Translations under genes and position numbers: made by a program
Notes under the pieces: generated by a model
Told to the model about the DNA's origin: nothing
The model's database searches: none
The model's input: the letters and a program-made list of their open reading frames with translations, nothing else
Assembly (NCBI GenBank): GCA_038496445.1
Contig: JALMLS010000440.1
Span: forward strand, 186,001-250,000
Length of the DNA: 64,000 nucleotides
Reading direction: 5' to 3'
Origin: Trichosphaerium sp. ATCC 40318
Taxonomy: Eukaryota; Protista; Tubulinea
Part shown: positions 13,412-62,300 of the stretch, piece after piece
Position numbering within the stretch: position 1 is the first letter of the stretch
Layout of the letters: every line of letters begins with the position of its first letter

Positions 13412-14559
13412 TCAATCCGCCCAAACTTCAATAATACATTGACTAAGATATTCAGCAATACCCTGCTTTGTAACTGAAGTTCCATGAATATCAATGAACT
13501 TAACACCAGAAAGAGCTTTGATTCCTTCATCTGTAATGCTCTTACATCCCAATAGAGAAATGTCATAGACACCAGTAAGCGCTTTGATGCCTTCATCTGT
13601 CACTGAAGTATAGCGTAGATTTATGGTATGAACACCAGCAAGAGCTACTATACCTTCATCTGTAACTGAAGTGTTGTTCAAGGTAATAGTGTGTACACCT
13701 TCCAACGCTTTGATACCTTCATCTGTAATACCTTTACACTCCGTAAGATTAATCTCATGAACACCAGCAAGAGCTTTCAACCCTTCATCTGTAATGCTCT
13801 CACAATTGCTAAGATCAATGGTATGTACACCAGAGAGACACTTCAAGCCTTCATCTGTTATTGAAGTTCCTTCAAGGTCAATAGTGTGTACACCAGAAAG
13901 AGGCTTCAAGCCTTCATCTGTTACTGAAGTTTGGGAAAGATGAATTTCATGAACACCTTTCAGTGCTTTGATACCTTCATCTGTAATACCTTCACATTCA
14001 TTAAGACAAATGGTGTGTACACCTGCAAGCGATCTAACTCCTTCATCTGTAATACGGCTACGCCAACGTAAGTTGATTGTATGAACACCAGCTAGAGCAT
14101 GTAACCCTTCATCTGTTATCCTTGCGCACTGAGAAAGGTCTACTTCATGACAACTAGAGAGCGATTTCAATCCTTCGACTGATGCGTTGATGCAGCTCAG
14201 TGCAATGGAGCGAACGCCTGAAAACTCTTTAATGAACGCTTCAGATAGAGATTTGCTCGATATCTTGACTTTTGTGTGTTGTAGAGTACTGCGATGTTTT
14301 AAAACTGCTCTTGCTTGCTCGATACTCGATATCGTGACTTCGTGGTATCCTATAACATCATGAATGATAGAAGCAAGGCAATGACATGTCTGACAAGCCG
14401 CGAATCGCGCTGTTGTCGTTCTTCGTAAAATATCCGCTAAAGTCTCTCTAGGAAGGTCTAAAATGCTTTGTGGAGCTCTATTATAGGTGTTACATTAAAT
14501 ATTGTGTAGAAATATCGCAAGTACGTTTGCTTTAAGCTAGTTAGCCTGTTTTTTGACAT
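13412..14559 (-). CDS. F-box-like + leucine-rich repeat protein
   Basis: Short first exon, then SILDLPRETLADIL...ACQTCHCL (F-box-like) and about 11 tandem 22-23-aa repeats ITDEGxKALxGVHTIxL. Confidence 0.8.
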
Positions 14560-22752: not shown

Positions 22753-23899
22753 TCAGTACTTGTAATACATTAAATAATAGAACGCAAGAAACAAAAATAT
22801 GACAAAAGGAACAATAGATTGCCATATGTCTGGTGGTCCATGGCGACTATGAACAGTTAAACGGCCGCTCGTATCCCACTCCTTATGCTCTCCATATTTC
22901 CGACGACATCTTTTATGGTACATGGTCTTCATGTTACCATTCTTGTACCACTTTTTGTACTGACCATGTTGTTCGCCATTGAGATAGTTTGCTTGGATTT
23001 TTATTTGTCCATTTTCATACCACTCTTTGAACTCTCCTTCTCGTTTGTGATTAATGTATTGTGCTTTGTATATTATTTGTCCATTTTGAAGCCACTTCTT
23101 ACACTCTCCATCACTAATTCCATTGACGAAATGACAGTGTTCCCTTAACTGTCCGTTTTCATGCCATGTCTTGTATTCTCCATTTCGTCTACCATTCTTG
23201 TAGTGACTACATTCTATAATATTACCGTTTTCATACCACATCTTACATTCTCCGTTACGTCTACCACCCAAATAGCTAGATGCTTCCTTTAATTGGCCGT
23301 TCTTGTACCATCTCTTATAATCTCCTTCATACTCATTATGGTGGTAGTTACAGTGTAACTCCAGTTGGCCATCATCATACCAGGTCTTGAGTTCTCCCTC
23401 TAGTTTATCATTTATGTAATGGTACTGATGCCGCAAGCGCGTATTTTTATGCCAAGCCTTGTATTTTCCTTCTTTTTTACCATTTTTGTAACAAAGTACA
23501 ATTAATTGGCCATTTTTTGTCAGCCAACTTTTGAGCTCTCCGTCAAGTTTTCCGTTCACATAGTACTGCTCAATGTACAGTTTTCCATTTTTGTACCACC
23601 TCTTATACTCTCTATGTCGTTGGGTATGTCTCCAATCATCTTCAGCCTAAAGACATGTAAATGTCAAGTTTTCATTTATTGTTTTTACCATAAAATCAAA
23701 AGTCTGAGGATCATATTTGAATTTTCCATTTCCCATGTTTCTTTAACTCATCATCAAATCTTGTAGTCGTTGCTGTGTATTTTGATAAAACAGGCCATAT
23801 TAGATAAATTTCTGTATCCAAATCAATAATATCGAGCTGTAACTCAAATGGAAGGTTTAAGAGATGGCAAATAGGCGTAGGTGGCGAAGCAGTCATCAT
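22753..23899 (-). CDS. F-box-like + MORN-variant (YwqK-like) repeat protein with C-terminal TM; apparent +1 frameshift near 23722
   Basis: About 11 repeats of GEYKxWYENGQLxxxxxYxNG; C-terminal IVPFVIFLFLAFYYL. The N-terminal ORF stops at KWKIQI* while the shifted frame continues FKYDPQTFDFM|intron|AEDDWRH. Confidence 0.72.
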
Positions 23900-24586: not shown

Positions 24587-25585
24587 ATGGCCACGTGTTG
24601 TGGTGTTTGCGCCACTTTGATAGTAGCTTTGATGAGTGTATTCGTATATTTTCTAGTAACGACAGCACCTACAGAGGCATACAAACCTGTAGACACGGAA
24701 GACATTATTGCTGAGCATGGAAAGTTCCTTAGACTGTCAAACGGTCGTATCCTTGAATATTTTGAATCAGGTGACATAACATCAGGTGATACTATACTAT
24801 TCCTTCATGGATATGGCCAGACAGGTCGATTCTTTAAGTTTTATTCGAAAATTTTTAGGAAACTAAAAGTACGCGTTTTATCCCCTAGTTACCCTGGTAC
24901 TGGGCGATCAGAGTTCTTTCCTTATGAGTTTAAAGACTTTCATAAATATGCAGAAGAATTATTGAATCACGTGGGAACTTATAAAATTTATGCTGTGGGT
25001 GTCTCAAATGGAGGTCCTCATATTGCTGCTGTAGCTGCAGGTCTTGGAGATCGAATTAAAGACATTGCGATGATCGTACCTCTTTCAGAAAAAGTACCAG
25101 GGAATGATCCGTTTAAAGAATGTCCCTTGATGTTTAGAACAGCGATGACGCTACTACAGCTTCCTTATATTGGCAGTTTTATTAATAATTATGTTGTTAG
25201 ACCTTCTCTTAGATATGATCCTATCGGTCATTTCGAGAAACTGATTCCAGAAGAATGGGCCATTTTAAGAAACGAGGCAAGTAAAGAAGAGATGGAGAAC
25301 CTGGCGAATGACCAAGCGCGTGGTGTTGTAGAAGGTGTTGATAGCTTGACTCATGTTATGTATCTTAATAGTAGACCTTGGGGTATTGATTATGGTAAAG
25401 TGGGGGAGAACAGAAGAGTATTTATTTACTCTTGTTCACGTGACACAGTTTGCCCTAGTTCTGGTCAGGAGTACTTGGCAAGCCGTATACCTAATAGTCA
25501 ACTCATTAAATACGGCTGTTCTCATATGACATCGTTCTCACATTTAACAGAAATTATACAGAAATTAATGCGCCATGACGAATAA
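24587..25585 (+). CDS. Intronless alpha/beta hydrolase with N-terminal membrane anchor
   Basis: ILFLHGYG oxyanion motif, GVSNGG nucleophile elbow, acid in RDTVCP, His in SHM; N-terminal hydrophobic segment. Confidence 0.9.
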   Translation: MATCCGVCATLIVALMSVFVYFLVTTAPTEAYKPVDTEDIIAEHGKFLRLSNGRILEYFESGDITSGDTILFLHGYGQTGRFFKFYSKIFRKLKVRVLSPSYPGTGRSEFFPYEFKDFHKYAEELLNHVGTYKIYAVGVSNGGPHIAAVAAGLGDRIKDIAMIVPLSEKVPGNDPFKECPLMFRTAMTLLQLPYIGSFINNYVVRPSLRYDPIGHFEKLIPEEWAILRNEASKEEMENLANDQARGVVEGVDSLTHVMYLNSRPWGIDYGKVGENRRVFIYSCSRDTVCPSSGQEYLASRIPNSQLIKYGCSHMTSFSHLTEIIQKLMRHDE

Positions 25586-26210: not shown

Positions 26211-26664
26211 CAACTTTTCAAAGTTACTAAACACAACCGGTGAAAAGATAATACATGTGACAAATATTGTACTAATAAACCTTCATTTCAGTCAAACATA
26301 CTGTACATAGCAATTCCAAGTTTATTTCAACCTTGGAATTATGTTATGTTCATCTTTACTAGTCACTGTAAATCGTGCATTGGTATTTAAGGTCTTAGCT
26401 GACTTCATGTTATGTTCTGAGTGTGAAGAGTTCCCGTTATCAATGGTTAATGGACAGAGATATTGTATATGGTGTGCTAGGTGGAACAGCAAAAGGTCAC
26501 CACCACTACTAGAAGTTCCTAACATGTGCACAGACTGTGATTGCATTCATTGATGTTGTGAATAAGATAACTATTGTATTCTTATTCAATAAGAAAGAAT
26601 ATGGAAATGTGAGGAAGAAGAACTGAACCTGTAGTAATACTTTATTACATTTTGCACGTGATAT

Positions 26665-30160: not shown

Positions 30161-30976
30161 CTAGGGTATGCAGTCTGTTCGAATGTTATTTACATAATTC
30201 CACTGTTCATTCACTTGACCGTCTTCATGCCATGATTTAAACTCTCCCTCTCGTTTACCATTGACATAGTTAAACAGTTCTTCTAATTGTCCATTATCAT
30301 GCCAAAGCTTGCTCTCTCCTTCTGTTTTACCTTGAACATAGTAACACTGTTCATTCAATTGACCATTTTCATACCAACATCTGTACTCACCATGTTGTTT
30401 GTTATTGACATAATAAAACATCTCTTCAAGTTGACCATTCTCATACCACAGCTTATACTCTCCTTCACATCTACCATTAACAAAATGACTTTGTTCAAGT
30501 AATTTACCACTCTCAAACCAACACTTATGTTCTCCTTCTTTCTTATCATTAACATAATAAAACTTTGCTTTCAATTCTCCATTACTATACCACTGCTTAA
30601 ACTCACCATCTCGTTTATCATTGACAAAATACCACTGCTCTTCCAGCATACCATCCTTAGAATAAAATCTCTTGTATCCTTCTTGGATACCATGTTTCCA
30701 CTGTTGAGTTACAACTCTTTTTGATCTTTTACTCCGTTTCTTCCACTTGCCATGTTTTTTCATCTCTTCATCAAACCGTGTTGTTGTTGCTGTGTATTTT
30801 GATAGTATCGGCCATTTTAAGTACGATTCTGAGTCTATATCGATGATATAATGATGTAGCTCTACTGGAAGATCTAATATTCTCGTATTGTGTTCGTTGT
30901 TATGTGCGTACTCCTTGTGTATGGTTTTGTAAGTGAGAAGTAAGCTACAATTACGTACCTTTAGTTTTTTAGCCAT
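30161..30976 (-). CDS. F-box-like + MORN-variant repeat protein
   Basis: RILDLPVELHHYII, then WPILSKYTATTTRFD shared with the 23.8-kb paralog, then about 7 MORN-variant repeats. Probable in-frame 45-nt first intron. Confidence 0.85.
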   Translation of the reverse strand: MAKKLKVRNCSLLLTYKTIHKEYAHNNEHNTRILDLPVELHHYIIDIDSESYLKWPILSKYTATTTRFDEEMKKHGKWKKRSKRSKRVVTQQWKHGIQEGYKRFYSKDGMLEEQWYFVNDKRDGEFKQWYSNGELKAKFYYVNDKKEGEHKCWFESGKLLEQSHFVNGRCEGEYKLWYENGQLEEMFYYVNNKQHGEYRCWYENGQLNEQCYYVQGKTEGESKLWHDNGQLEELFNYVNGKREGEFKSWHEDGQVNEQWNYVNNIRTDCIP

Positions 30977-37501: not shown

Positions 37502-40059
37502 ATCTTATTCCATTTGAATAATACTAAATAATAATAAAGCATGATCTACAAGTTGTATAAGTAACATTACCATCCAATATTTCTAATTGTAGCTTTTTTA
37601 TCCACAGAATTGCCTACGTTTTATATCTGATAAATATGCAGCAAAAACCATGAGAATTTGGATGATTTGAGCTAGTATTGTAAATACATGCAGTTGCACA
37701 ACAATAAAACATACTCATAGGAGCATCTTCCATCATGGTGCTTGCTATATCTAATGCATATTGTTCATGAAAAAGACAGCCAGACCAATCTTGATGCCCA
37801 GGGACGGTTAAGGACAATTAAAGCAGTTTATGGTGCAGTAATCCTCCTTGACAAAAGGCCAACCTAGGGTAGGATAAGCATTTCTCCAGCCATCATCATA
37901 ATAGCATAACTCAGCTTGATACTCTTGTCCGCCATAGTGGTAGAACTTTAGTGGCTCATCAATGATAATTTTGTAGCCATTCACAGAAACTATTTTCCTG
38001 AGTTCGTTTTCATGGAGTTGTTCTCCATCAATAAAAATTGATGTTACAAACACCATTTCTTGACCTGCTTCTCCAAGATATACTAAACATTATTAGGATC
38101 AGTATAGGGGTTGAGTGACAATGCTTACAAGTTCGGCCTAAACGCGACCATGTTGGGTAAAATCTCTTTCCATGAATTTCGCCCTGGTCATACACTGCTA
38201 TACCTTCCTATGTTGAAAGTCAATACAATGGATTTAGTGTCTGGAGGTAGGAGCTTACGTTATGATAACTTGATCGTATTCACCAGCTGGTTTAGCACCG
38301 TGAAATGTAATTGTAATGTTAGAGTTAAAACGACATGGATGGAGCAAAAGTGTACTTGTTCACCAAAACCTGTGATAAGAATGTTTAGGTAGGAGCTCAT
38401 TCAAAGAAAACGAGTCGTTTACCTTTGTGTTGGCTGGGAGAGTGATGGTTTGGTCAGAAGTAGGTACTACTGATCCAGGCCACGTGCTTTCTTCTTGCCA
38501 TAAGTTTAATCCAGCTTCATTATGCGGACAACCAACTCGTTGATAAACAGACACTTCAGGTTGTGGTCTGATGTGAAAAAATACGAGGTTAGAGTAACTT
38601 GGCTAATCAAACGTGACTTACGGTTTTCTTGCTGTTATCCTTGTTGTACAGCTTGGTAATAAACTTGATATGAATGGTGCTTCAGGTGTTTCTATACGCA
38701 TATTCTTCATTTCAAACTCGGATTGAATAAACTGTTCGGAAGCACCATTGTCAAGCCAAAATAAGAATATCCGGTAGGTTTCAATGAGAACACGTGATTT
38801 TTCAACACAAACCATTATTTTGTTACATTTTTAGAACTACGGTTACATGGTGCATACACAGTATCGCCTCCAGAGATACCTTGAGTGATTTTGAAATGTT
38901 CAATCAGTTATTTCACGTTGATTGGGCTCTTTTCGGCGCTTCTTTGGTGAGCGTACAGCGCTCCTACGTAAAATACTTGTTACAGTGCTGTTTTATGGAA
39001 AAAAAAGGTACAAAGCTCCAAACACACGAGATTTCTTGGTTAAAATAACAATGTAGCTACTTACCAACAGCTGCCTAACGCCCTTCCGTTATGAATACAA
39101 GCAATATTCATATTCATTGTCCCATAAGCCATATTCATTAATATCTCTATGCGCTGAATAAGCCCAGCTCACTGAAATGAAGTAAAACCGTTCGGAAACA
39201 ACTCCGCTGTTCTTTTATAGAGCTGCCGTGCTGTTTTTGGCGGTGCTGAAAATGCAAAAAATATGCATCCAAATGCGCATGGATGTTAGCCTTTTTTTAC
39301 ATTTGCAAAAAAAGCAAAAAGCTGTGTTATCTCGCCAAATGTTACCTCAAATCACACATAGGCTATTTTACCATTGATACAAACCATGAAAGTACATAAC
39401 ACATTTAGACAACACCTCAGTACGGCTCACAAAACAAGTAGAGAAGTTAAATACAACAGCATTCTACCTAAAACAAATAGTTAGGTGTAACCCGCCTTCC
39501 TCAGTTACACAAAATGCTTCTCCTATACTACAGAAGCCCCAAATACAAGTGTTTAGTATGGGATATTATCTATACCAATGTATACAATCTAGTGGCACTT
39601 GTAAAAGCATTTTGTACAATAAAACTGTGGAATGGTAACAAGCTTTGTTTTTCCATCAATTGTAACCCATTGCCGATACATAGGGCATCCACTGCAAAAC
39701 CTACAGTTGTTAGATATATACGAGAAGGATTATTACAGTGTCCTATTCCTATTTTTGCAAGCTCTTCTAGAACAATTTGAATACTTTAGCTGGCGTAAAT
39801 GCTGATGGTAATCTGATTGTGAAAGTGACAAAAGTTCATGACTTCGTTTGTTTGATTTGGTTTTCATCTTAATTGGCTGGTGTGTAGGGTGTAATAAAGC
39901 ATGTTTCACACACTGTCGCTCGGTTGGTGGTTCTTGTACAGTTGTGGTTGTACATCTTAATCGTTTTGATGACCTTGATGGCTTTCTTTGCTTGTGTGCA
40001 TCAATTGATAGTTTTTTATGCCACTCTCTTAAAGAGAATTAGATAAAACAATAGGCTTA

Positions 40060-42109
40060 CAGGTCTAAAATTTTCGAGCTGTTTTTATGGTAGATACCAT
40101 GGATTTGTGGTATAATTATACCATCGATTACAATTTTATACCACAAATTCCAGTATAATATACCATAAATCAAAGGATTTATACCATAAAACAGCCAAAT
40201 TATACCATAAATATGCAGTAAAAAGTGCGAATTTATACCATATTTTTTCACCTGAAAAAATGCAATATATGGTATAATTCTACCATAAAACATGGTATAA
40301 AACACAGTATAATACCACAAAGTCTGGTATATTATACCTTAAAACTTGGTAGATTATACCACAAAACCAGGTGTATTATACCGTGTAAAAACTGTTCTAA
40401 TAATAAAACCACATTTATTAATACATTTTTTTGTTTACATCCGTGACTTTTGGTTTTGTCCATATCCTCTTTTGTGGTAGTTGACACATCAAATAACCTT
40501 CAAAAAAAATATTGTACTTGCTGTAAGTGCATCGAATGGACATAGCATGAAAACTAGAAGAAGAATTAGTGAAGGCTTGATGCACAAAATAAATAGTCGT
40601 ACAAAAATTGCTGTTTTGTTGTGGTGGCAGCACTGGGAGTAACAAATGACCTGTGCGGTGGAGCCAAACCAAGGCTAAAACAAAGAAATTAAAATAACTG
40701 CCAACTTCATCGGAAACAAGTTCTAGCAGAATTGTACCTGTTAGCTAACACATCTTGGTTTTTTTTTTATCATCTATCTAGCTTGGTTAAAACCTATGGC
40801 AAGCGGCTTCAAAACAACTACTTTTAGCGTACCTTGTGTTGTGCGGGCGATAAACTGGACAAGACTTAGTTTTGTGCTCTGACTTAGCCAATTGGTTTAC
40901 AATATCACTCGTAAGGTCAACGCATGGGTGTGAAGCCTAAATGCTATCTGTTCTGGCAAATGCGGGCGTTTAGTAGGGAAAAATTCAAAAAAATCCAAAA
41001 AAATCCAAAAAAAACCAAAAAAATCAAAAAATGGGTAGACTCTGAAACAAATTGGCCTTATAGCACTATTCACGCGTTTTAACATGCATTGGAGCATATA
41101 TCAAAAATGTCAAAAAAAAATAAATAATTTTGCTCCTGATTTGGTAAATGAGGCTGTATGGCGTTGATTGAGTGTAAAAATGCCTATGGAGGGGAGAAAA
41201 AAATGAGAGCCGGAGAAAAAAACCTCCAATTGGAGGTTTTTTGCGAATGGGCATTTTTCGAGCGCTAAACGCGTTTTTGGTGTGTCTACCACTGTAGCGT
41301 TCTAACATGGGTACGCGGAGTGGTTTCTTCCTCAAATACCATTAATCGGAGAAAGTTGGCCAATTTATCCCTAAAACGCCCGTAATTGGGGCGCGTTACC
41401 AGATTTCTCTCTTAAAACTGTTTTTCACACATTTATATGCCAATTATGTTCAACAACGGCTACTGTCAAAGCATTGTGTGGTATGGCATTTGTGTAGGTC
41501 CATATGCTATTAAATCAAGTGCAGACCAAGTGAGCTTTGACTAACTTATACTTATACAGTATAATACCACGGTATAATACCACATTTTATGGTATAATTA
41601 TATGGTATAATGCACGGTATACAATACTGTAAAATACAGTATAATACCATGGTATAATACTGTGTTTTATGGTATAATTATATGGTATAATGCATGTATA
41701 ATATACTTTAAAATGCAGTATAATACCATGGTATAGTACCATGTTTTATGGTATAATTATATGGTATAATGCATGGTATAATATACTGTAAAATGTGGTA
41801 TAATACCATGGTATAATACTGTGTTTTATGGTATAATTATATGGTATAATGCATGGTATAATATACTTTAAAATGCAGTATAATACCATGGTATAGTACC
41901 ATGTTTTATGGTATAATTATATTCTATAAATTGAGATATGGTATAAACATGGTATAATGGCTGTTATACCATTTGTCCAAAAAACATGGTATTATACCAT
42001 ATTTTATGGTATAATTATATGGTATAATTATGGATTATACTGAGCTTGTACCATAAAAGGTGATTATACCATAAAATATGGTATTATACCATGATAATTT
42101 TCAGACCTG
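40060..42109. mobile_element. Nested 2.05-kb non-autonomous TIR element with TA TSD and GGTATAAT arrays
   Basis: TA|CAGGTCTAAAATT at the left end and AATTTTCAGACCTG|TA at the right end; dense GGTATAAT/ATTATACC copies at both ends. Confidence 0.85.
41557..41920 (+). repeat. About 80-bp tandem repeat x4.5 built from GGTATAAT motifs
   Basis: Units start at about 41557, 41637, 41716, 41796 and 41876; units 2/4 and 3/5 share diagnostic variants. Confidence 0.9.
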
Positions 42110-44549
42110 TATGTGTTGTTTAAAATGCATACCTACACTGTGAGCATGATGGCTTTCGCTGGCGTATAGTGTAAGGTCTTTTGGAAGTGAGTTTCAACAA
42201 CAGATCTGCAACTTGGTTCATGTACATGGGATAACTTATTGAAGTAGGATTCAGCATTGAATCCAGCAAAAAGATGAAGCAAGAAACAAATCACTAAACT
42301 CATTAGTGTAGCCATACAATAACTACGTACAAGTATGCTGCCAATAAAGCTGTGGTCCAACGTGTGTGTTTTGTGGAATGGATACGTTTGTACTTAAGCA
42401 CACTAAAAACAGTCAATGGCATAAAACACAGTATTACAGACAATCTGTTGAAAATATCACAGCAGTTCTTCAGTTCTGAATATGCGTGTACTGGTTCTGG
42501 CTTGTTTACAGCTTTTTTATCTGATTTGGTTGTTTTTTTGCTTGATACAAAAACAGATGGATTGCCAATGTTTGATATGTACTTTTATGTCTTTGAACAT
42601 ACCAACACAAACAACCATTGTTTATAGTGTCAGCATCATAAATCCAACAATGGGCTCCCACACCGTTGTTGGGAAGCATCTAACAAGCTTAAGGAATTTC
42701 GCCAAATGGTTACTTACTTGTCGCAAATGGTTTATCATATTTGGTGCTTTTTTGGAACTCATCAAGCCAACAAACTTAAATCTGTCATCATCTAAAAGCT
42801 TAGAAATGATTGGTGTAGTGTAGTACGAGTCAGTTGCTATAGTTATACGCTTTGTGTTGTCTTTTTTGAGTATTTGTGATGCTATATAATGTGCCATGTG
42901 AGATGGTGGAATAGTACTTTCTCCAAATCGCATTTCCAATATCCAGGCCAAACGTGCTTACCATTCTATCTTAATATTAATATGCTAAAGTTATCACCAT
43001 GTACCTTAAAACATAATTCAAAAACCCAAAAGCCCTCTTTAACTGGTTTACGTGAACAAAAACAAGTGAACCATATTTCTACACAAAGTCAAAATGCATT
43101 GTAATCAACATCGTACTTGCTCCTGGTAGTACAGTTTCATCCAAACACGACAATATTCCGGGATTAAAGTTTTTTTTAATAGTTGAATTCAGTAAGCTAC
43201 ATCCTTTAGCACTCATAGATTATTTCACATACCGTTGGACCTCTAAAGGCTGGTAGTCAATTTGTTTTGTGAGTTCTTGCCATTGCTCTTTTGTACAACT
43301 TGTTTTTATAGCTATTAATGGTATGTTAATAATACTTTGTTACGCAACATTAAATAAACATGCCTATATTCCCAAATTTTGTATCAGTACTCCAAAAATC
43401 GCTAAGAGTAAACTGTGGAGACAACTTCATTGTTAACAACACACCAAAGTAGTGTTCAATGCCTTTCATATTCCAAGAACCAGCACATGTCCATTTATGA
43501 TGTTTTTTTTTGTTACAAGAAGCAACATACTTCTTCACATCAATATGCGCTTGCAATGACTCCAATGTGGTAATGCCATTTTCTTCAGCCTTTTTAAGCC
43601 TCTTTTTTGTCTTTAACACCGTGTTTTTGTACCAGCTAGTTGAGACCACATCTTTCATTACTTAATATAAAATGACAGAACCTTATAATGTACCTGGATA
43701 GAACTCTACCGTTTTGTTTTGCATGTCGTGTGTATACTTGATTAGAGTGTATTTTTTAAGTGCATTGTACTGTTCTCGAAGATCATTTGGAAGTGTTCTA
43801 TACCCTACAAACTATTAAAGCAATAAAACCACATTTACCACCTTGATTTGAACACCGTTTAACCATTTGAAATAATGGATGTAACCACTGTTTTACTGCA
43901 TCACGTATGGAAGGAGGATAAGAGTGCTCCCAGACAGCGTTATTACTAGACTCTATATCAAGTATATCTTTGGCATTTATGTGCTTGAGTGGCTGTTGGT
44001 TAAGCTGTTTAAGTGTTTCGTTGTTGTGCCCAGTAATCCAATTCTATTCATGTAAGTAGTTACACATAGCTTTTTATCACATACTTTAGAAATAGTGTCC
44101 TGCTGGGCTTTCCATTCTTTAAATGCTCTCTTAAAGCCAGTTATTTCTTTTGCTTCTATTTCCCACATATCGTGTTCACAAGTTTTGTTACTAATTGTCA
44201 TCTTCACCCGTACAATCCACTTTCTATTGCCCTAGAACAACTTAGCTATTATATTGAAAAATGTCATAATACACACAGCCTTTTCAAACCACAAGGCCCT
44301 TCGTCTACCAAGTACAACAACAATAGAAATGCTCTTGTGTTTTGGACCAGGAACAAATATTGTAGCTTTAGCAGTCTCTTTATTTTCAACTGAAAAAGCC
44401 TCATCATGCTCATTGCTATTGTTGTTGGTGGGTACAAACATAGAATCAGAACTGTTGGGCTCATCAAGCAAGTCTATTTGAATAGTACTTCTTTTGGTGG
44501 TGCGAATGTTGTGACTATGTTTGACATCCAAAGTGACTTTATATGGATT

Positions 44550-45510
44550 ATCACATTTGTATATTACACGCTGAACTCTCCACCCATCACCATGCACTTT
44601 TGTATTTGTCCCTACAGTTGTCAACTATTAATTTGTCAAAAAAAACAAACATGGGTTTGATTTAACACCAATAGTTGGGTTTTTCATGTTATCCACAAAC
44701 CACCAACCGCTGTTGGTGCTGACGTAACATGTAAAATGTTTTGGATTTGGCTGCCACATAATTATGTACTGTGCTTTCCACTCACTATGTAAAGTTAAAT
44801 GAAACCATAATTATGTTAGTACTGTTTGTTATGCATAAACAACTCTGGAATGATATTGAAATCATTCTTTGGCAGTACTGTAAGTAACAACGGCAAAGTA
44901 ATAGCCTATAATTGTGTAAGCACTGTAATGTTGAGATATTGTATGCCTTGATTTCTTTGGAACCACCATAGCGCATGTTTTGCAGTTTGAAGCTCTGCCA
45001 ATTTTCTTGTTTACCCATTCTTCAAAATTGTGTTGGACGCTTCTAGGTGCAAAAACAAACACAGGTTTTGTTTGGTATTCTATGCAATGTTATAGCTATA
45101 AATATGGGCACAATACCTTCACAGTTGCATTGTACATCATACTCATAGGTCGCATGAAAAGCAAGACATTGTTGTTGCACAAACTCATGAACAGCATCGA
45201 CATTGAATAGTGTTGAATATATGCCAGAACGTTGTTTGATATATGCCGCTTCAATCTTCTTTTTCTCCTTCGGAAAACGTTCGTAGAGATCAGCCAAAAA
45301 CTGTTTAATGAATAATTCTTTATTTTCTGTGCTTGGATCTCTCAAAAGCACTAAAAGAGTAGGAAACACCTAGCACGTGTAAATCCACTTGCAGCTTCAA
45401 AAAATGTACGTTATCACCAACAGACTGTAAACCTGTGTATACAGCATCCCAAGCACAGCTATGATTACGCCAGCTAACGAGAGGCCATTCATTAGGATCT
45501 ATCAACAATT
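44550..45510 (-). pseudogene. Transposon-borne USP-fold cysteine protease (deubiquitinase/deSUMOylase-like)
   Basis: Cys box WRNHSCAWDAV (~45450-45475); Zn-finger pairs VQCNC and CKTC; ITLPLLLTV; His box WKAQYIIMWQPNPKHFTCYVSTNSGWWFVDNM (~44690-44785); terminal strand WRVQRVIY. At least one frameshift near 44970. Confidence 0.7.
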
Positions 45511-48500
45511 TACATTAGACGAGCTAATTGGGAAGCTTAAAGTAGATTGGCATCTTATTTAACTCGTAAACATGAGTGTGGTACTATTCCGAAGGAGTAT
45601 AAACCCATTGAAGACATCTTTCATTATTTAGCGTTTTTCGGTTCCGTACCTTCGTTCAACTGCACTTTAGAGGCCATAAAAACCCTACCTCTACAAGAAG
45701 TTCATGTTTGAAGCACTTAGACCTTGTAAAATATGAAACACGTGTGAACCACAAACCGTTTTTTTTATTCTCAACATTATGAGCTGTACTTGCAGGTAGC
45801 GGTTCTACAGTGTGTTTAAAGTTGTTTAACACTATTCAGAGTATCGGAAATCCTCTTTTAGCTATTCAGCGCATAGAGATATTCATTCATGAATATTCAT
45901 GGGCATTTGGCGAGTCACGAAGTTGAGGAGCTTTTGGTTTGTAGCACCTAGCGATGTTCCAAATGGATAGATTCAACAAGTTGCGTTTGAAAACCGAATC
46001 GGAATAGTCAACAGAACACCAAAACCCACAAATCCAGTCAAAAGCAGCCATCAAATTGCACAATTTTCGACCGTTTACTGTGTGCATGAATAATGAATGA
46101 ATTTTTTTAGTCGTGAATATTTGTGAATGTAGGCTGTATTTGAATATTCAAATTATTCATTCATAACGGAAGGGCGTTACAGCTGCCTTTTTGAGTTGTT
46201 GTGCAGTACTATCCAAAAGCACGTGTACAGAAAAAATGAAGACATCTCCTTCAACAGTCTCTTCTCTTGTAGCAATAGCGAGTAAGTCAATAGCTATTCC
46301 ATGCCACCACACTGCAGGTCTGTTTTATTCATAGAAAAGCGTTAACTAAGTCCGTAATATCATTCATAAGAGTACAACAGCGTTGTTTTGACGTACACTG
46401 GTCTAGATACGTAGACTGTATGGCCTCTTCCATGTGTTTTAGCGTTAGTAACACTGACAGTCGTTGTTGGACCGCCTAGAGCGTACCAACCATTTAATAA
46501 TTGGTTGTTCTCGAAGTCTTTAGAGTACCAGTGAGGCGTTTACAATGGTATTACAGCGAGTACCTCCATTGTGCAATAGATTCGAGATACAACTGTCAGT
46601 AACGCATGTATTGTCTCCGTTCGCGCGTGAATAATCGCTATCGTGTGTGATAAAGACAACAGCAATTGCTACAGCGATTATTGTTATAACAATTGCTACT
46701 GCAGCAAATTACGCCTGGCTTCTTCATTACGGAAGTACTGCGTTGATAAGTTTGTAATTTAGCTAAATTGGAATTACTCACCTCGTACCATACTCCCCGT
46801 AGCCTTGGTACTTTAATGGTACCTGGTAATGTTCATAAAGTGGCCGTTACCTTTATCAGGAAGAACGATTCCGTTTTAATATTAAAACAGCATTCAAAGA
46901 AAAAGACGGTTTGACCGTATCAGGACAAGGGTGCGAGTATCTTTCCAATCCAGAGAGTTGCAACAACTTCAAATTAAGGGAGAAAAATAGTTGGTGGTAG
47001 TGAGTGACATTTATCTAGGCCATAGTGATTTAATCACGTGAGAACTTTTTATTTTTCTGCTCGTACCTACAAAGCCTTATTCTTGGATAAGAAAGTATTG
47101 TGGATTACTTCACCCACACGATTCCGTTTGTTTATTTTGCTATCTAGCGCCGCCAATCGCGTATGGTATCATTTTACGTTCCTTGTGGTCTTTTTGGATA
47201 CAATTCTGCAGCTTGGTGCCAAAAACGTTTTGTTGCTAAGTCCAATATTCCAAAAATATACTTCCCGCGTGTTGGAGAACAATATTATACGTAGCAATGT
47301 TTTAAAGTATGGTGTTCAATGAGTGTTAGCGTTCACCATAGCTTATGATACGTACCTCGGACTTATAATCGTAAAGCAGCCAAGAACAGCCAAGTTGGTT
47401 ATTTTTTGTTAACGGCGCAAAAAGTATACGACGTAGGAGTACGTTTTAACGCTGCTTTTAGCTATTTTATCAAATTATTGAGCGGGTAGTCGCGCGAAGA
47501 TTTTTCGATCAAAATTTTCTATCACGTGTAGCGTCTGCAATTAAATACTTCAAAAAAAAAAAAAGTGTTGTCAATTTTTTTTGAAAACAGCGTAACGTCG
47601 AATGATGTACAATTTCCGTACGACCATATACGTATCATAACTGCAAGGGAGTTTTCAAAACACGGCAAAACTATACCCGCTTATAAAGCTCAAACTGGTC
47701 AATGTACGAATACTTTTTAGCGAAGCAAGAAACATATTAGGAACTTTCTTTTCGTGCAGTTTGTGAGGATATTCACAGTTTTTTCATAACGTTCTTCTAT
47801 CCAATCTCTGCAATTACATTCTGTCGTAAGAAAGAGCAACATTAAAAAAAAAAGTGAACGGATAGAATGAACTTTCTTACGTCTTTTACTTTTCTTGTGT
47901 TTTGGTCTTTCATGTATATTCTCAAGAACAGCAAACAGTAGAGACGAGGACGGTTAGGGTTTTGCTAATTTTTATTCATATGTGACACGTTTTGTGAAGT
48001 AGTGGACTTATTTTTTGTTGACTTGGTACAGGTTGTCTTGAATCCGGTTAGAGTCTTAGTGATTGGTTGTTTTAAATTAACGCGAGCGAATCATAAGTTC
48101 ACAAATACTATGCGCTTTAAACGACGCCAGGGGCGTTCCCTTTTGTAACGTTTTGATGTAAAGTACACTCATTACATCCTAACGCTAGCTACTGTCGTTA
48201 TTTTGTACTGTGTGAGTGACACGGCCAATCTTTTTTGCCGTACCCAGTTCACATGGTTTTTTTTGATGTTTCGTTCTCCAATAGTCTACTAGATCGTTTA
48301 TCTAGCCGTTTACTACAACCTTCGGTTGGGCAAATCTACTCTTTCTCCATAGTGTTTTGAATCGGGTAAGTCCGTCCCCAACACAAAGTAGTCCAGAAAA
48401 CACAATAATACTGCTCGTTTTTTTATAGAAACTAGCGCCACTAAAGATTTGGGTTGCCTCGAATCACTCCTCGCTAGTTTGAAAAGTCACCAGTTTTAAC

Positions 48501-48667: not shown

Positions 48668-51600
48668 ATGCGGGTTTCGTTTTGCTTGGCCTCGCTTTAT
48701 TTGGTTGCTCTTATTGCGACCGTATACGGCGCTTCAAGACCTACAGAGTCTGTACCGAACTGCGATGCTGCTTCTCCTGAATGGGGATGTCCTCCTGATG
48801 ATTACAGAGTGTTCCGAAATGGTAGAATTGATAGACTTACCTGTAACACAAGACCAGAACCTCGTATGTCATGGGCAACAAAGGTTGTTCGCAGCAATGC
48901 ATACAGCACTTGGGCTGGTGCAGAAGACGCTAAAGAGACCGAATACGTCCCAGAAAAAGTGATGGATATTAGCATTCGCGTCAACAACTATGCCTTCAAA
49001 TACCGCGGTATTCTTATCTATGCTCAAGATGCCGATGGTAACAGAGTTGGCGAATGGCTTCTACCAGATGAACAGAACCGTACGTTAAAAAAAAACAACT
49101 TCGAAAAGTCGGCGTTTTATTTTTTCCGGTTGATACGCAAAATCACGTGATAAAACGTGTTGTTTAAAAAAATCACGTGATTTTCGTTCGTTTTAACTTT
49201 TTGACTACTTTTCTGACTTGCCTTCCTCAGTTGGTTCTTTTGCTTTTTTTTGTCGTTCACGTGCTTACTTCTTTTTGTAGCATTCTTTCAATTGCCTTGG
49301 CCTAATACACACGAGTGTCGCCAGAGTATTACACACCAGAGTGCTGAACTCAAGCCTCTCAAGTCAACATGGAAATGGAAGGCTCCTCCAAAGGGAACAG
49401 GTCCAGTAACGTTTCACTGCTTGATTAAGCAAGGTGACGCTAATACCGGCGCCTTTTATTGGCCAAACAACGCCGGAACCGGTCCACTTCAACTCACAGA
49501 ATCAAGTGCACGTAAACCACGTCAAACATGGTTTCAATCCAACGTAAGCGTTTTTCCTTGTACAATTTTTTCTATTGTTCCCTGGTCTAATGTTTCTTCT
49601 TAGAGAGGTCAATCTTGTACTGATAGATGTGCCGAAGAGAATCTCCTATGTGATGTTGTCCATATGGAGCGTGTAAACAGCCCAACAAGAATTGAACAGC
49701 TCATTATTCCACAAAGTTTCCCTTGCAAACTTCCTTATGTCAGTGGTTGTAGCAACAAAGGAGCTACAATGGGTACTGATGGTCTTTGCTACTTTGACGA
49801 CACAAGATGTGCAGACCAAGGGCGTAATACAGGACGAGTTACTTGTGACTCCAGAAGTGGTGATACAAGAATCGGGTATGCTAAAGTCAAAGTCTTTTTG
49901 GTTTTTTTTCTTACTTCCGTTTTCTTTGAACTTACTTTTTATTTAGCCTTCGTATGTGCAAATGTCTTGCAAGTACTCTTCCTCCTGCCAATCCAGGTAA
50001 TACTGTTATTGCCGCAAGAGGTGCAACTTCACCTGCCACAAAATCGACAACATCTTTCTTGTTCATGGCTCTCGCTGTCCTCGGTTTGACAATGCGTTCT
50101 TCTGGAAAGATGACAACTTCAGTCGTCTTGGCTCTCTTCCTCATCGCTTTGGTTTCCTTCCCTTCAGTTAACGCTCACAACTGGGCTACAAGTTTTGCTA
50201 GAAGCACAAACATTGCTAGTACCACAACACCTTGCCCACCAAGAAGACACGCTTCCCCTCATGTTCAACTTGGCGCCGGTCAACAATTTGAAATCGAATG
50301 GGCTGTCGGTCATACTCAGCCTTCGTACTACGTCATAGTGAAGGCAGAAGATGAAGCAAGGCTCAAAGAGGTTTCATTCGCTGCTATGAACGCTTACATG
50401 GACAATGCACCTGCCGGCGCATGCCAGAACTTGCCTGTATACCACAGACAGTTCAGAGCTCGAACTGGCTATGACGCTTTCTTACAATACTACAGTGGAC
50501 CTATCGCTGCGACTTCTCCAAACTTCATTCCAAGGCCAGAAGCTTTCGGTGGTTGGGCAGATGATGCTACTTTGTTCGGATACAAGGACGAACTTGAAGT
50601 AAGAAACTACTGCGAGTATGCAAGCAATGAATTAGATTTCGTTCTTGGTATCTTCAAGTTCGAGCACTACGCACACAGGCCTCAAGACGCTGATATGGTA
50701 AGGCTCACAATGCCAGCTGGTGCTGCTTTTGGTGATTACGTTGTACAATGGCTATGGAGAGGATACAGAGATTGTGTTGATGTTAATTATGTCAACAAGC
50801 AGGTAGAACATATCTACGGTCTTGCAGATCCTGTTGGTGGATTCACGTACGTTTTTCTCATTTCTACCTTTGCTCCTTTTTCTTTTTCATAATAAAGGCG
50901 TTTTTCTTACTTCTCTCTTAGCCGTATTGATCACTGCTACTTACCAGCTCGCCGTGATGTTTATGGTACGTAAAAAATCTTGAAACTTGAAAATCACGTG
51001 TTAGCATTTTGCATGAAAACGTGCTCTTTTATTGTTTTGTTTGTTTCTTCTTCTCACTTCTATTATAGATTGTCATAGAATCTATACAGACACAGATGTT
51101 TGCGCCAGGGCTTGTTCAATCAGACGAGGATGCAACGCCTATATTGTAATGCCTAGACAACAACTCGCAAACCAATACAACGCCCAAGCTGATCTTCTTC
51201 CTCAACTTTGCAAAGATAACGTTGTAGATCTCGGAGAAGATCCCTCAAACGTTGATGTTTGCTTTGGAGTACGCGGACGTATTCCATCCGAGACTTTTGG
51301 ATTAGAAGAAGTCGTACATGCTGGAGATCCTGCTTACCACTCAACATGTTACATCAAAGGATCTGGTCGTCTCTTTGCAGACTACATAGTACCTCCTCAA
51401 CATCAAGATATCCCTTGGAGACACGGCGACGAATGTATCTCTTGCGATGCTGTCAATCTAAACAAGAACATAACACGTGTACCTAAATGGCCAATGACAA
51501 ACGACTGCAGGAACTGCGACTTGGAACCTAAAACGGACACACCTCCTTTCAACCCACCTAAACTTATCCTCAGAGAAGCCGACCACTACTGCGATGGACA

Positions 51601-51937
51601 TGGTGTTTACGTAAACCTTGGAGGGGGTAGGAGACATCATGATTGTCCTGGAGACACATGGAGGCAATGTAAGAAAGAAGTGTTGATTAGAGGACGTGCT
51701 GCACCTTGGCACAACCGTCATTTTGCTGGTGATTGCGCTGCAGCTGCATCTAGGGATCCAGAGTGTTCAGATGAAATCTACACTCAGAACCTTGCCTCTG
51801 TGCAATACCAAGGTAAAAATGCTGTAAGATGCTACTGTATGACAAAGATGGCTTGCTGTAACGGATGTCGCCCAAGAGCTCCTGGAGTTAGAGCCTTCCT
51901 TTGGAACGTATACACTCTAGACCGTGGAACATCTTAA
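48668..51937 (+). CDS. 919-aa precursor: signal peptide, Reeler, Cys-rich module, hydrophobic hairpin with internal signal peptide, His-brace LPMO-like domain, PAN-like/Cys-rich tail
   Basis: Exons 48668-49079, 49281-49543, 49604-49875, 49947-50846, 50922-50965, 51069-51937 sum to 2760 nt and splice in frame with GT-AG. Reeler motifs YRGILIYA..VGEW, ITH, WKAP..GTGPVTF. LPMO-like VNA|HNW, EWAVGH, YVVQWLWRGYRDCVDV. Confidence 0.85.
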
Positions 51938-58028: not shown

Positions 58029-59318
58029 AACTCATAAACATTAACATGTATATAACTTAATCATAATGTATACATTTTTTTTTTGATTGAAATCACTTCG
58101 CTTGGATGCTTATGATATTAGAGAAGCTGTTATATAAGTTAGAAGCGCTCTAAAAGGACCGTGTAGTCCTTGGGCCTTTGTGTCTTCAACAAAGCTTGTT
58201 TATTGTTGAATTTAGTTAGATGGTTTTTTGTTGCATTAACGAGAAATTCCTGTTGGTGAACTAACTGAAAAAGTCAAACCAATTAGACTTCTCCCTCGTT
58301 GTCGACAAACCAAATACTGTTAACTGGCTGCAAATCCTTTTAATTTAGGAGTCATTGTTAACTCAACAACAACACAAACTTACGGCGGGTTATCTCTGAA
58401 TTCTTTTGTAGGTTTTGCATTTCAATCGCCTAATTATTCTCTTCCCGCATCTGATATAAGGTTCAGTAGTACATCATTCACCTGAGTTTGATATCTATTT
58501 TGACATTTGAAATGTTTAGCTTAGATTTGTTTGTCCCGGTCAGTCTTTTACTACAGGTTCGCATATATATTTTCAATAGAACCACCAACAACGTCACCTC
58601 CAACAACACCTCTAACAACTTTGGATCCAACACCACTTCCAACAACATCACTTCCAACATCACAGGCACCTACACAATCTATTCCGATAGCATTAACAGC
58701 TACCCATACGCTAAAATTAGTCATGATGTACACATCATTCCATAGCATACATGGACGAATTTGCAATTTAAAAACAGTTCTTGTCTCAAAGAAAAACTCA
58801 AACTATTAAAACTTATTTTTTCAAAAAAGTGCCGTTAGCCTGATGGTCGATCTACCAAGCTTTGAGAATTCAACTTCTGTTGCACATCTTTTGAGTTCTT
58901 TTGGTTGCTTGTTTTACTTGTTTTCAATTGTAGCGCTCTGTATCTAAGACTTCTAAAACAAAATTCTACCACTTATGCCATCTTGAATATATTTGTTTAT
59001 CATCCTTTGAAGGGGTACATAGTCAGATATGAAAGTACTTGCTAGAATACCAAAGATAAACATGTCATTCTCAGATATTAGTGATGATTAATTGTCCTAT
59101 TGTTCGACTTATACAATCAGCGAACACGGGTTTGTCCCATCACATAACAAATCTTCATTTGTCATCCTTACTTGAGCACGTGTCCTTCAATCATGCGTAC
59201 CATCACATTCATATTTTCATTCAATCCAATTACTTGTAACAAGAGAAACTATAAAACCGTTTGTAACACGTGGGATTTATTTTAATTGTTCTAGTCAATA
59301 AAACAAACTGTTTTTTTC

Positions 59319-62300
59319 TTACAAGTTTGCCACCTCTGTAATGTAGAAATCACCATCTACTTCCCTCCCTTTTTCGTATGATGAGGATGAAGATGAGAAA
59401 TCGAGCCCATCTTCGCTATCCCAAGTACCCAGCAATTTTTGTATTGTTTGCACAATCTTCGCAAAAGTAGGTCTTTTTTTGTATTCACTTTGAAGGCAAT
59501 TCGTCAATAACTCTTTTCCTCCGTCGATACCTACATTCTCTGGTATTGGTATACATTCGCCGCTTCTGATACGATCTAGAATATCAGTTGGAGATACTCC
59601 TTGCCAAGGTACTTGTAGTGTCTCAATTTCCCATAGAAGTAGTCCAAAAGAATAAACATCCGATTGCATATGAAATTGCTTCGATGAGATAACTTCAGGT
59701 GCCATGTACGCTGTATGAAAGAAAAATTAATTATTAACACAAATAATGTATATTGAGATATTAAGTACGTACAAACAGCGCCAGGTATACCTATAATGTA
59801 CTTTTGGTCCTTTCCTGTGAAAAAAACAAAAGTGAGAAAAAAATACGAAAGAATAATAAAAGGTAGTACCAAGCAATTTGCTGAAACCGAAGTCTGCAAC
59901 TTTAGCCAAACCCTTCTCAGTCAACTAGACATTGACACAAACATTAGAAACATCAACATACAGTATAACATACCAAAACATTTCCTCCATTTAAGTCACA
60001 GTGAAGAACGTTCGACAAGTGTAAATAATTCAAACCTAATAAGAAGTTGACACTACTAACAACAAAATAGTTTGTACCAAGCGCTATATCTAATGCTATT
60101 TCAAGCTTCCTATCATTTGATAGACTCCTTCCATTGACTTGAAGGTAATGACGCAAAGATCCTCCACTACAATACTAACAAGGATGAGAACAAAAACAAT
60201 AACAGTTAAAGAAATTTTTACCTCCATCAGAATGTACTTTACGTTTGAGTCCAATGATGCTCCAAGGAACAATACAATATTCGGGTGTCGTAACGTCCAA
60301 TGTACACCAAGCTCATCAGCAAGTAGTTCAAGCTTTGTTTGTGATTTCTTGGCACGTTCTATAGTCTTGCATGCAACAGTGAGTCCACGGAAAGTTGCTT
60401 TATATACAACACCAAAATATCCTGTGATAGAATGTACTGAGCAAACCATAGGTTCTTTTTGCAGATGTTTAATAAAGAACGTACCTGCGCCTAATTCATC
60501 ACGAAGTGTTACCTCATGACTTGGTATTTGCCATGACTTATGCAATGTTTTTGCCAAATCAGCTCCTTTTTCTTGAACTGTATCAACAAAAAATTGTAGT
60601 AAAGAATTATCGCTCAGGCTGTCCAAAAACGATAATGCCAAGCGAAAGTCTACAAGATTATCATGTAAGTATAGGGCTATGTATATTATAGTTCGAGAGT
60701 ATTAACTACGAAAAACAAAGTGAGTACCAATTTCATCCTGTACAACTATTCTATCTTTTCCGGCTGTGTATGAAATCTTCATGTCTGATATGTCATGGTT
60801 CTCAAGTATCATTTCTTGGAACTGATCAAGAGTATGTTGTTTAGATATAGCAGCAATAGATGCTTTCCCGTTAATTACACATTTAATAAATAAGACGTCT
60901 AATAGACATAAGAACATTGAACTTTAATAAGAAAAAAATAAGAAAAAATTAACCTTTGTTTTCCAGCTGGGAGTAAGTGCGTGTGGGTTCTCTTTGGCTA
61001 TGACAAGAGTGAGATAGTTTTTATACATTTATATTACGTACACTGGGCGTGCTTTATAGTTCTCAAGGATTCGTACGATTTCGCCAAATTTAGGTCTATT
61101 TTCTGGCTTTTTCTTCCAACAATCCTTCATAATATTTACAAAAATCTCCTTTGTGTGCAGGTGTATTGAAGGTCGTAATCGCCCAGAGCATATCAGCGCC
61201 TAAAATATGGATATTTAAAAATAAAGATAAAACACAAGGAGGAGGAAAAATAGAAAACAAAGTGAAGTTGTATTTTTTTTTTGTACAATGTTGTCACTTC
61301 TTTCGCCGGAAACATAAGGACCTTTGACAACACTAAAAATACTTGTAAGATATTAAACAAGTTACGTGTGTATAAAGTACGCCTGTTGTGTTGCTGTTAA
61401 TTGCCACAAAAACATTCCATACATGTAGGAATTTGCACTATTAGTTCATTAAATGTACATTAAACAACTGAAGCGTACCTGAAAGATGTTCCTGCAAAAT
61501 CGTTTTGTAGTATTTCAGGGGCAAGAAACTCATAGTTACTTTGTATAAGAGACTGTAAATCTTTACTGAAAGGAACATGGAATAGTGGTATCGCTTCATG
61601 AATGCCCTGAAATGAAGGTTAATAATACACAGCAAAAAAAAAATATACATACACATAATTTAACAATTGGGTTAGCACTGTTTATCTGCTTTATCTATAT
61701 ATGTATAAGTTGCTTGTAATATTTATAAGACTTGAGCGTACGCCTATATACTTGGCATTAAACTTTGGGAACAGTAGATCAGGGTTTTGGGCTTCGAGGT
61801 ACTCAAAGGCTTTGGCAATATCAAGCGCTATTTTTAACTTTTTTTTCTGCGAGAGAGGTTTTCTATCTGACGCCTGGGCACGTTTGGTTCAGTAAAAAAA
61901 ATTGTGTTAACGTTTATTACACGTGTGGCTTACCACCAATACTTCATGAAGTCGCTTTGGGAATTTTTCATAAGCAAAGCCTCGTTGGGAGTCAAAACAA
62001 GTTCCAATGAAAGTTTGCAAAGTTGGTGATGAAAGAGTACTGGCAAGAACTGTTAGAATTCAGTTGTTCTAGATAAAATACGTACCTGAGTATTATATTA
62101 GAGACTATGTACGGGATATAATTATCGTCTTTGAGAAATACAAGCTCTTGGTGAGATGCTGGTTTAATCATTGTTCGACGTAGTAATCTAAGAAAAAAAT
62201 GAGAAACTTTTTTTTCTGAAGTGTACCCAAAGTCAGGCGCCAAGTGTGTTAGTCTTTGAAGCGTTTTAGAATCTTCATCACCATCTTTTAGTTATGTAAG

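Follow-up and report, generated by a model that had tools for sequence, protein, structure and literature searches.

Structure and boundaries of the element

We analysed a stretch of 64,000 nucleotides from Trichosphaerium sp. ATCC 40318 (contig JALMLS010000440.1 of assembly GCA_038496445.1, positions 186,001 to 250,000; hereafter the window, numbered from its first letter), which carries at 39068-46187 a DNA transposon with perfect terminal inverted repeats (TIRs) and an 8-bp target-site duplication (TSD). The sole coding capacity that can be recognised in it is that of a DDD transposase whose motif order and spacing are of the piggyBac type; a preliminary description of this DNA had noted piggyBac-style motifs in the one transposase that it saw inside. 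The element is delimited by the following repeats.

39068-39075, no strand: left TSD copy, 8 bp, CAGCTGCC, read directly and identical to 46180-46187
39076-39096, plus strand: left TIR, 21 bp, TAACGCCCTTCCGTTATGAAT, abutting the left CAGCTGCC
39140-39160, plus strand: left sub-terminal inverted repeat, 21 bp, AATATCTCTATGCGCTGAATA, 43 bp inward of the left TIR
45863-45883, minus strand: right sub-terminal inverted repeat, 21 bp, matching AATATCTCTATGCGCTGAATA, 275 bp inward of the right TIR
46159-46179, minus strand: right TIR, 21/21 identical to the left TIR, the exact reverse complement of TAACGCCCTTCCGTTATGAAT
46180-46187, no strand: right TSD copy, 8 bp, CAGCTGCC, adjoining the right TIR

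The 21-bp TIRs starting with TAACG and the exact 8-bp duplication, both previously reported, were confirmed at 39068-39096 and 46159-46187. When up to 3 mismatches were allowed, the TIR 21-mer had 2 matches in the window, against 0 expected from 100 shuffles, and the perfect inverted repeat AATATCTCTATGCGCTGAATA was found exactly twice, again with 0 expected. The direct repeat measures exactly 8 bp, and the flanking DNA prolongs neither the inverted nor the direct repeat. The spacing of the sub-terminal repeats from the TIRs is asymmetric (43 bp on the left and 275 bp on the right), and both ends are enriched in TGAAT/ATTCA pentamers, with 5 at the left end and 9 at the right end per 125 bp compared to a window mean of 0.42, the count at the right end being the maximum of the whole window. 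Taken together, the TIRs, the sub-terminal repeats and the pentamer enrichment are hallmarks of a cut-and-paste transposon with putative sub-terminal binding sites.

The interval is a single cut-and-paste DNA transposon with TIRs and an 8-bp TSD, and the perfection of both repeats indicates a recent insertion. It spans 7.1 kb in total, corresponding to a parent element of 5,052 bp once a nested, TA-flanked insertion of 2,052 bp (N1, see below) is subtracted. The second 21-bp inverted repeat, N1, a TAACG start that fits the hAT consensus YARNG, and an intron-rich gene with extra N-terminal and C-terminal parts are features that go beyond the preliminary description.

Each TIR (39076-39091 and 46164-46179) holds its own 5-bp palindrome, TAACG-CCCTTC-CGTTA, statistically unremarkable alone, so that a small stem-loop might arise from the terminal 16 nucleotides, or these might serve as a symmetric binding site.

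An intron-rich, probable transposase gene on the minus strand

The body of the parent element is occupied by coding sequence on the minus strand, in which we delimited the following regions (ORF, open reading frame).

42133-43661, minus strand: piggyBac-like DDD catalytic core, 9 exons and 8 GT-AG introns of 32-62 nt, 391 aa (curated splice model; exons 43661-43360, 43298-43233, 43196-43117, 43078-42998, 42956-42718, 42679-42583, 42520-42438, 42392-42331 and 42298-42133)
43662-44650, minus strand: linker and N-terminal region of the transposase, 5 short YAG introns, equalled by 3 of 100 shuffles; plus strand untraversable
44235-44624, minus strand: acidic low-complexity ORF of 130 aa within the linker and N-terminal region
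44651-45626, minus strand: upstream Cys...His region with papain-like/USP-type resemblance, read through with 4 YAG introns, a result that 5 of 100 shuffles also reach
39592-39705, minus strand: candidate last exon, CxxC-x22-CxxC-x3-CH followed by a stop, from a reading of the translation

The motifs earlier described as piggyBac-style proved to be collinear and all on the minus strand, with CLDET at 43147-43133, TDSYYTT at 42834-42814, CCDIFNR at 42464-42444 and TRW within HTRW at 42368-42357. The candidate catalytic aspartates are D1 in CLDET, D2 in TDSYYTT and D3 in CCDIFNR, and in the spliced model D1 and D2 are separated by 77 aa and D2 and D3 by 91 aa. This spacing, which rests on our own intron model, is near that of D268, D346 and D447 in the T. 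ni piggyBac transposase, which lie 78 and 101 aa apart (PMC5381638).

Coding is borne out by an unbiased traversal test. A stop-free path through the core needs the removal of 7 introns of 30-65 nt; among 200 dinucleotide shuffles none was readable with fewer than 10 introns and 40% had no path whatever, and the plus strand across the core needs 11. Over a longer interval, from 45500 to 42133, the minus strand forms a single ORF once 16 introns of 30-65 nt are taken out, compared to at least 24 in 100 shuffles, and traversal of the plus strand is impossible. Half of the acceptors in the core model (4/8) are AAG or GAG, compared to YAG at 7/7 host acceptors, which were read in a Tyr/Ser-Thr-type kinase gene at 59300-60700 with many introns of 42-80 nt (seen over 59300-60480) that served as host intron reference. 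We rejected a splice model confined to YAG acceptors, since paths of that kind exist only where they remove the catalytic motifs.

Three local distances in the core equal those of the piggyBac family consensus, with 16 residues from DE to KP..G, 22 from G to [FY]G and 18 from D3 to RW, and the context KP-x5-Y-x7-D-x2-N, followed after 18 aa by RW, is piggyBac-like as well. An AlphaFold2 model of the D2 exon alone, with a predicted local distance difference test (pLDDT) score of 51, shows a strand-helix order compatible with the beta3-alpha1-beta4-alpha2-beta5 order of the RNase H fold, with D2 placed after beta4; its Foldseek matches all had E>0.3 and were meaningless.

At the other end of the gene, the CxxC-CxxC-CH pattern of the candidate last exon occurs twice in the six frames of the 64 kb, compared to 0.1 expected per shuffle. 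The Cys-rich domains (CRDs) of piggyBac-related transposases are of the type CxxC-CxxC-CxxH-CxxC or of the variant CxxC-CxxC-CH-CxxxH (PMC8086355), and this exon resembles the variant CRD without its final CxxxH. The sole other CxxC...CxxC..C..H site in the window lies outside the element, at 26464-26550 on the plus strand.

The upstream Cys...His region contains the motifs NHSCAWDAV, VDAVHEF, CNCEG, NCKTC, KHFTCYV and WWFVDN, with a putative ATG at 45626. It gave no Pfam match at E<=10, including UCH/USP and OTU, and no sequence match in the PDB, and its protease-like identity is a lead suggested by these motifs.

The gene extends from ~0.55 kb inward of the right TIR as far as ~0.5 kb from the left one. 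It thus fills the element in the layout of an autonomous transposon, which argues against a small nested fragment. We interpret the parent body as one long intron-rich minus-strand gene with a protease-like N-terminal region, a DDD core and a zinc-finger C-terminal exon. The copy studied here is probably defective, given the AAG or GAG acceptors of the core, needed at two splice junctions or more, the stop after CSQC with N1 shortly beyond it, between the core and the zinc-finger exon, and a C-terminus that could not be joined.

A nested foldback element inside the transposon

40058-42111 including TA (N1 proper 40060-42109), no strand: N1, foldback/MITE-like element (MITE, miniature inverted-repeat transposable element), TA on each side, 2.05 kb

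N1 lies 12 nt past the stop codon after CSQC (42146-42135). Its ends consist of TACAGGTCTRAAA in inverted orientation, 13 bp with one R position, an end pattern for which at least 2 matches occurred in 3 of 100 shuffles. The arms are densely made of GGTATAAT/ATTATACC units, among them a tandem array with a period of 80 bp and 4.7 copies (41557-41929), and at 40979-41031 the element has a 10-bp microsatellite rich in A. The N1 ORFs scanned against Pfam gave no match and no coding signal, and blastn found no second N1 copy within the window, nor was a related transposase available. We regard N1 as an insertion later than the parent element and have discounted it from the parent length. With Tc1/mariner-type foldback MITEs it shares TA flanks, short ends starting with (TA)CAGG, long inverted arms and no coding capacity, whereas its arms of GGTATAAT-type units and its 80-bp tandem array set it apart, and this family label is a candidate one.

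Affiliation of the transposase and search for relatives

Pfam matches of the transposase type within the element were limited to DDE_Tnp_1_7, DDE_Tnp_1_4 and RNase_H. DDE_Tnp_1_7 (PF13843) matched one exon at 43353-43661, upstream of D1, over profile positions 18-70 with E=0.013. The region around D2 (42625-42957) gave E=0.14 with DDE_Tnp_1_4 and E=0.24 with RNase_H. From the catalytic motifs and these matches we infer that the protein is related to piggyBac rather than to another DDE clade. Since the evidence from these tools is thin, we grade its identity as a piggyBac-related DDD transposase as likely, though not demonstrated.

Searches for relatives were negative throughout. Neither blastn nor tblastn found further copies or paralogues within the window, and the exact TIR 21-mer had no match in metagenome, viral or prokaryote-genome contigs. 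Two gene pieces of 103 aa and 108 aa had no match in word-indexed protein collections, nor did back-translated gene pieces in metagenome and viral contigs.

We also inspected the element for other superfamilies that could account for its ends. Pfam, applied to the 30 largest stop-to-stop ORFs of both strands (46-130 aa), detected no hAT, P or Merlin domain, no BED finger or hAT dimerisation domain, and no THAP/Tnp_P_element, IS1016-like DDE or SWIM/KDZ core; Zisupton and Novosib, for which there is no dedicated Pfam model, are weakly excluded. The hAT motifs ER.FS and D.W[TS] occur nowhere in the element, and there is no C/DxxH between D2 and D3, a signature that marks hAT transposases when located between the second and third catalytic residues (PMC9587614). 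The preliminary description had found no piggyBac with TTAA-flanked, CC-starting ends nested inside, and a scan of TTAA pairs over 38000-47500 bears this out: none had at least 13/20 matching inverted bases except two spurious low-quality pairs. This result excludes the case of a canonical piggyBac sitting inside some other element.

The enzyme that moves the element

The central question is whether the resident transposase acts on the ends that surround it. We favour, with a probability of about 0.5, that it does, and that the element represents a divergent piggyBac-related lineage with an 8-bp stagger, because the gene fills the element, no hAT remnant is found and the TSD fits neither hAT target preference. 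These preferences, nTnnnnAn for the Ac type and nnnTAnnn for the Buster type, form a weak criterion, and CAGCTGCC agrees with neither of them. We infer that the transposase is cognate to these ends and that the 8-bp stagger is its own property. The enzyme would bind the 21-bp TIR, the sub-terminal repeat of 21 bp and the sub-terminal regions rich in TGAAT/ATTCA, would then excise the element, and would join it to the target by a stagger of 8 bp, where canonical piggyBac makes one of 4 bp at TTAA. Only tentatively do we propose the more specific version, in which the element belongs to an undescribed piggyBac lineage, or to a sister group linking piggyBac to IS4-type transposases, characterised by 8-bp non-TTAA cuts, T-starting hAT-like termini and an N-terminal cysteine-protease-like module, in a eukaryotic host whose proteins have almost no near relatives in present databases. 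A divergent piggyBac/IS4-related lineage with a different stagger and relaxed target specificity had been put forward in the preliminary description; the part of this proposal that stands is a coherent TIR/TSD transposon filled by its gene, while the cognate link and the relaxed specificity, both from one copy, and membership in the superfamily, with a Pfam match (E=0.013) below the gathering score, are putative.

A number of observations weigh against the favoured reading. The termini are not those of piggyBac, as had already been recognised: in all 157 piggyBac-like elements surveyed the target has 4 bp and is essentially TTAA, and the TIRs measure 12-19 bp and begin with C (PMC5381638). Here the TSD is the 8-bp CAGCTGCC, TTAA is present at neither junction, and the TIR, with 21 bp and a TAACG start, lies outside the 12-19-bp C[C/A/T][C/A/T]...G rule. 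The match of the single exon to the DDE_Tnp_1_7 profile scored 15.2 bits compared to a gathering cut-off of 22.4, and the other exons gave no match. When the 111-aa piece around D2 was searched with HMMER against 1.84 billion representatives, no piggyBac was recovered, the only matches being two spurious phage tail-fibre repeats, and PDB sequence searches with four gene pieces returned chance matches only, never piggyBac or USP. The spacing of the catalytic motifs depends on our own splice model, with its non-YAG acceptors, and the fourth conserved aspartate (D450) is Asn here, three residues past D3 in the context CCDIFNR. Splicing from the core to the Cys-rich exon across N1 gave no convincing path, so that the 3' end of the gene is not joined, and with one copy only the link of the ends to the gene is not replicated. 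In addition, the ends themselves look like those of another superfamily. An 8-bp TSD with a 21-bp TIR is a textbook hAT combination, both values falling within the 8-bp TSD and 10-25-bp TIRs of that superfamily (PMC3942097).

These hAT-like termini support a different reading, in which the ends, TAACGCCC..., are non-autonomous ends of a hAT element, or of another family with an 8-bp TSD, that a transposase encoded elsewhere moves in trans. The piggyBac-like gene would then be carried as cargo: a piggyBac-derived host gene that was captured or domesticated, or else an old insertion whose own ends have been lost. We consider this less likely, but the full compatibility of the termini with hAT makes it a stronger contender than the preliminary description implied. 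It is favoured by the start of the TIR and by the many introns. Kempken and Windhofer are said to have given 5'-YARNG in 2001 as the hAT terminal consensus, and TAACG fits it, with a chance of ~1/64 if the ends were unrelated to hAT. Short sub-terminal repeats are likewise typical of hAT ends, and some 16 introns are what a long-resident or domesticated gene would have, Tpb2 having 12 introns and 1,220 aa (PMC5381638). Furthermore, a defective-looking copy that nevertheless has perfect TIRs and a perfect TSD implies mobilisation in trans in any case. On the other hand, the gene stretches, like that of an autonomous element, to within ~0.5 kb of one TIR and ~0.55 kb of the other, and the capture of a complete ~3.8-kb multi-exon gene by a hAT element would be unusual. 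The lack of hAT domains in the ORFs scanned, of the two hAT motifs in the element and of inner piggyBac termini argues in the same direction, as does the misfit of the TSD with the Ac-type and Buster-type preferences, weak as that criterion is.

The element could instead be autonomous and cognate but belong to another RNase H-fold DDE/D superfamily with an 8-bp TSD, for example one that is Novosib-like or Zisupton-like, the piggyBac motifs being convergent or over-read. The marginal sequence support for piggyBac, the lack of relatives in the databases searched, termini and a TSD that depart from every piggyBac criterion of the 157-element survey and the unconserved D450 all speak for this, yet we judge it improbable, because DDE_Tnp_1_7 is the sole Pfam transposase family matched upstream of D1, both the D-D-D spacing (77/91) and the local contexts are piggyBac-like, and the CxxC-CxxC-CH tail is a feature of the piggyBac family. 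Finally, the interval might be no transposon insertion at all but a host gene that chance repeats, or a segmental rearrangement, happen to enclose. A single copy seen without an empty site for comparison would be compatible with this reading, which is scarcely credible in view of two independent perfect 21-bp inverted repeats, of an exact 8-bp direct repeat abutting the TIRs precisely (chance 1 in 65,536) and of the end-specific pentamer arrays.

Insertion site and surrounding window

When the element was excised in silico, a 51-aa ORF spanned the insertion site (46188-46324 on the minus strand plus 39040-39067), with a donor-like GTAAGT sequence 3-4 nt beyond it, which makes a host exon a candidate site for the element. 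As one interrupted host exon or gene the flanks gave no continuous path and no Pfam match, and this was rejected; we also abandoned the hypothesis of a G8-domain gene interrupted by the element.

The rest of the window contains two paralogous intron-less ORFs with MORN_2 repeats on the minus strand (22753-23559 and 30161-30976; Pfam E=7e-32 and 9e-29), an LRR_6 protein at 13412-14170 and a complete alpha/beta-hydrolase ORF of 332 aa on the plus strand (24587-25585; Pfam E=5e-12), for which no homologue was found at E<=1e-5 in a word-indexed protein collection. A GC-richer block on the plus strand at 48668-51937 (41-45% compared to ~36%) has ORFs of 160, 312 and 301 aa without a Pfam match. An Rfam scan of the window gave no match.

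Comparison with known transposon systems

To our knowledge, TTAA targeting and seamless excision are regarded as defining, mechanistically linked and universal in piggyBac transposases, whose 4-nt TTAA overhangs permit scar-free repair. Literature searches turned up no piggyBac-like element with a TSD other than 4 bp and none with a USP module. If the favoured reading is true, a natural piggyBac-type DDD enzyme that joins its element to a non-TTAA target by a stagger of 8 bp would mean that the target-joining geometry of the fold is evolvable, and it might be a starting point for piggyBac-like tools free of the TTAA restriction. If the ends are instead those of a hAT element carrying a piggyBac-derived gene, this would be a rare case of one transposon family ferrying the transposase gene of another.

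The resemblance to the piggyBac superfamily, for instance to the T. ni element, lies in the DDD triad with its spacing of 77/91 compared to 78/101, in the piggyBac-type contexts of the aspartates, in the N-terminal domain exon weakly matching PF13843 and in the candidate C-terminal Cys-rich zinc-finger exon. Features foreign to that superfamily are the 8-bp TSD, the T-starting 21-bp TIR, the Asn in place of D450, the many introns, the extra N-terminal Cys/His region and the extreme sequence divergence. The general plan of the ends, a TIR with an asymmetric sub-terminal repeat, is shared with T. ni piggyBac, where a 13-bp TIR is accompanied by a 19-bp repeat at 3 and 31 bp (PMC5381638).

With hAT elements (Ac, hobo, Tam3, Hermes) the element shares the 8-bp TSD, a TIR within 10-25 bp, a terminal pentamer fitting YARNG, as does the TAAAG start of Tam3, short sub-terminal repeats and a size of ~5 kb without N1. 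In contrast to hAT, the element has no BED or hAT-dimerisation match, no hAT motifs and no C/DxxH, its resident transposase is of the piggyBac type, and its TSD departs from the Ac and Buster preferences.

The domesticated piggyBac transposases PiggyMac and Tpb2 of ciliates are similar in being long (~0.9-1.2 kaa), in their intron-containing genes, in the DDD core and in a variant Cys-rich domain of the CxxC-CxxC-CH type, but they are encoded by single-copy host genes without TIRs or TSDs, whereas the gene described here belongs to an element bounded by TIRs and a TSD. Long ORFs of the window end in all three stop codons, for which reason we rejected a ciliate genetic code, and with the standard code the host is not a Tetrahymena- or Paramecium-type ciliate.

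Unlike the bacterial IS4/Tn5/Tn10 transposases, the enzyme has no YREK signature, an Asp rather than a Glu as third catalytic residue, a eukaryotic gene structure and no significant sequence similarity. Those enzymes nonetheless have an RNase H fold, produce hairpins at the end of the transposon and have been placed in a distant grouping with piggyBac, and the 9-bp stagger of Tn5 and Tn10 is near the 8 bp found here, so that, if the favoured reading is true, the element would help to compare piggyBac with the IS4/Tn5 enzymes and their stagger of 9 bp.

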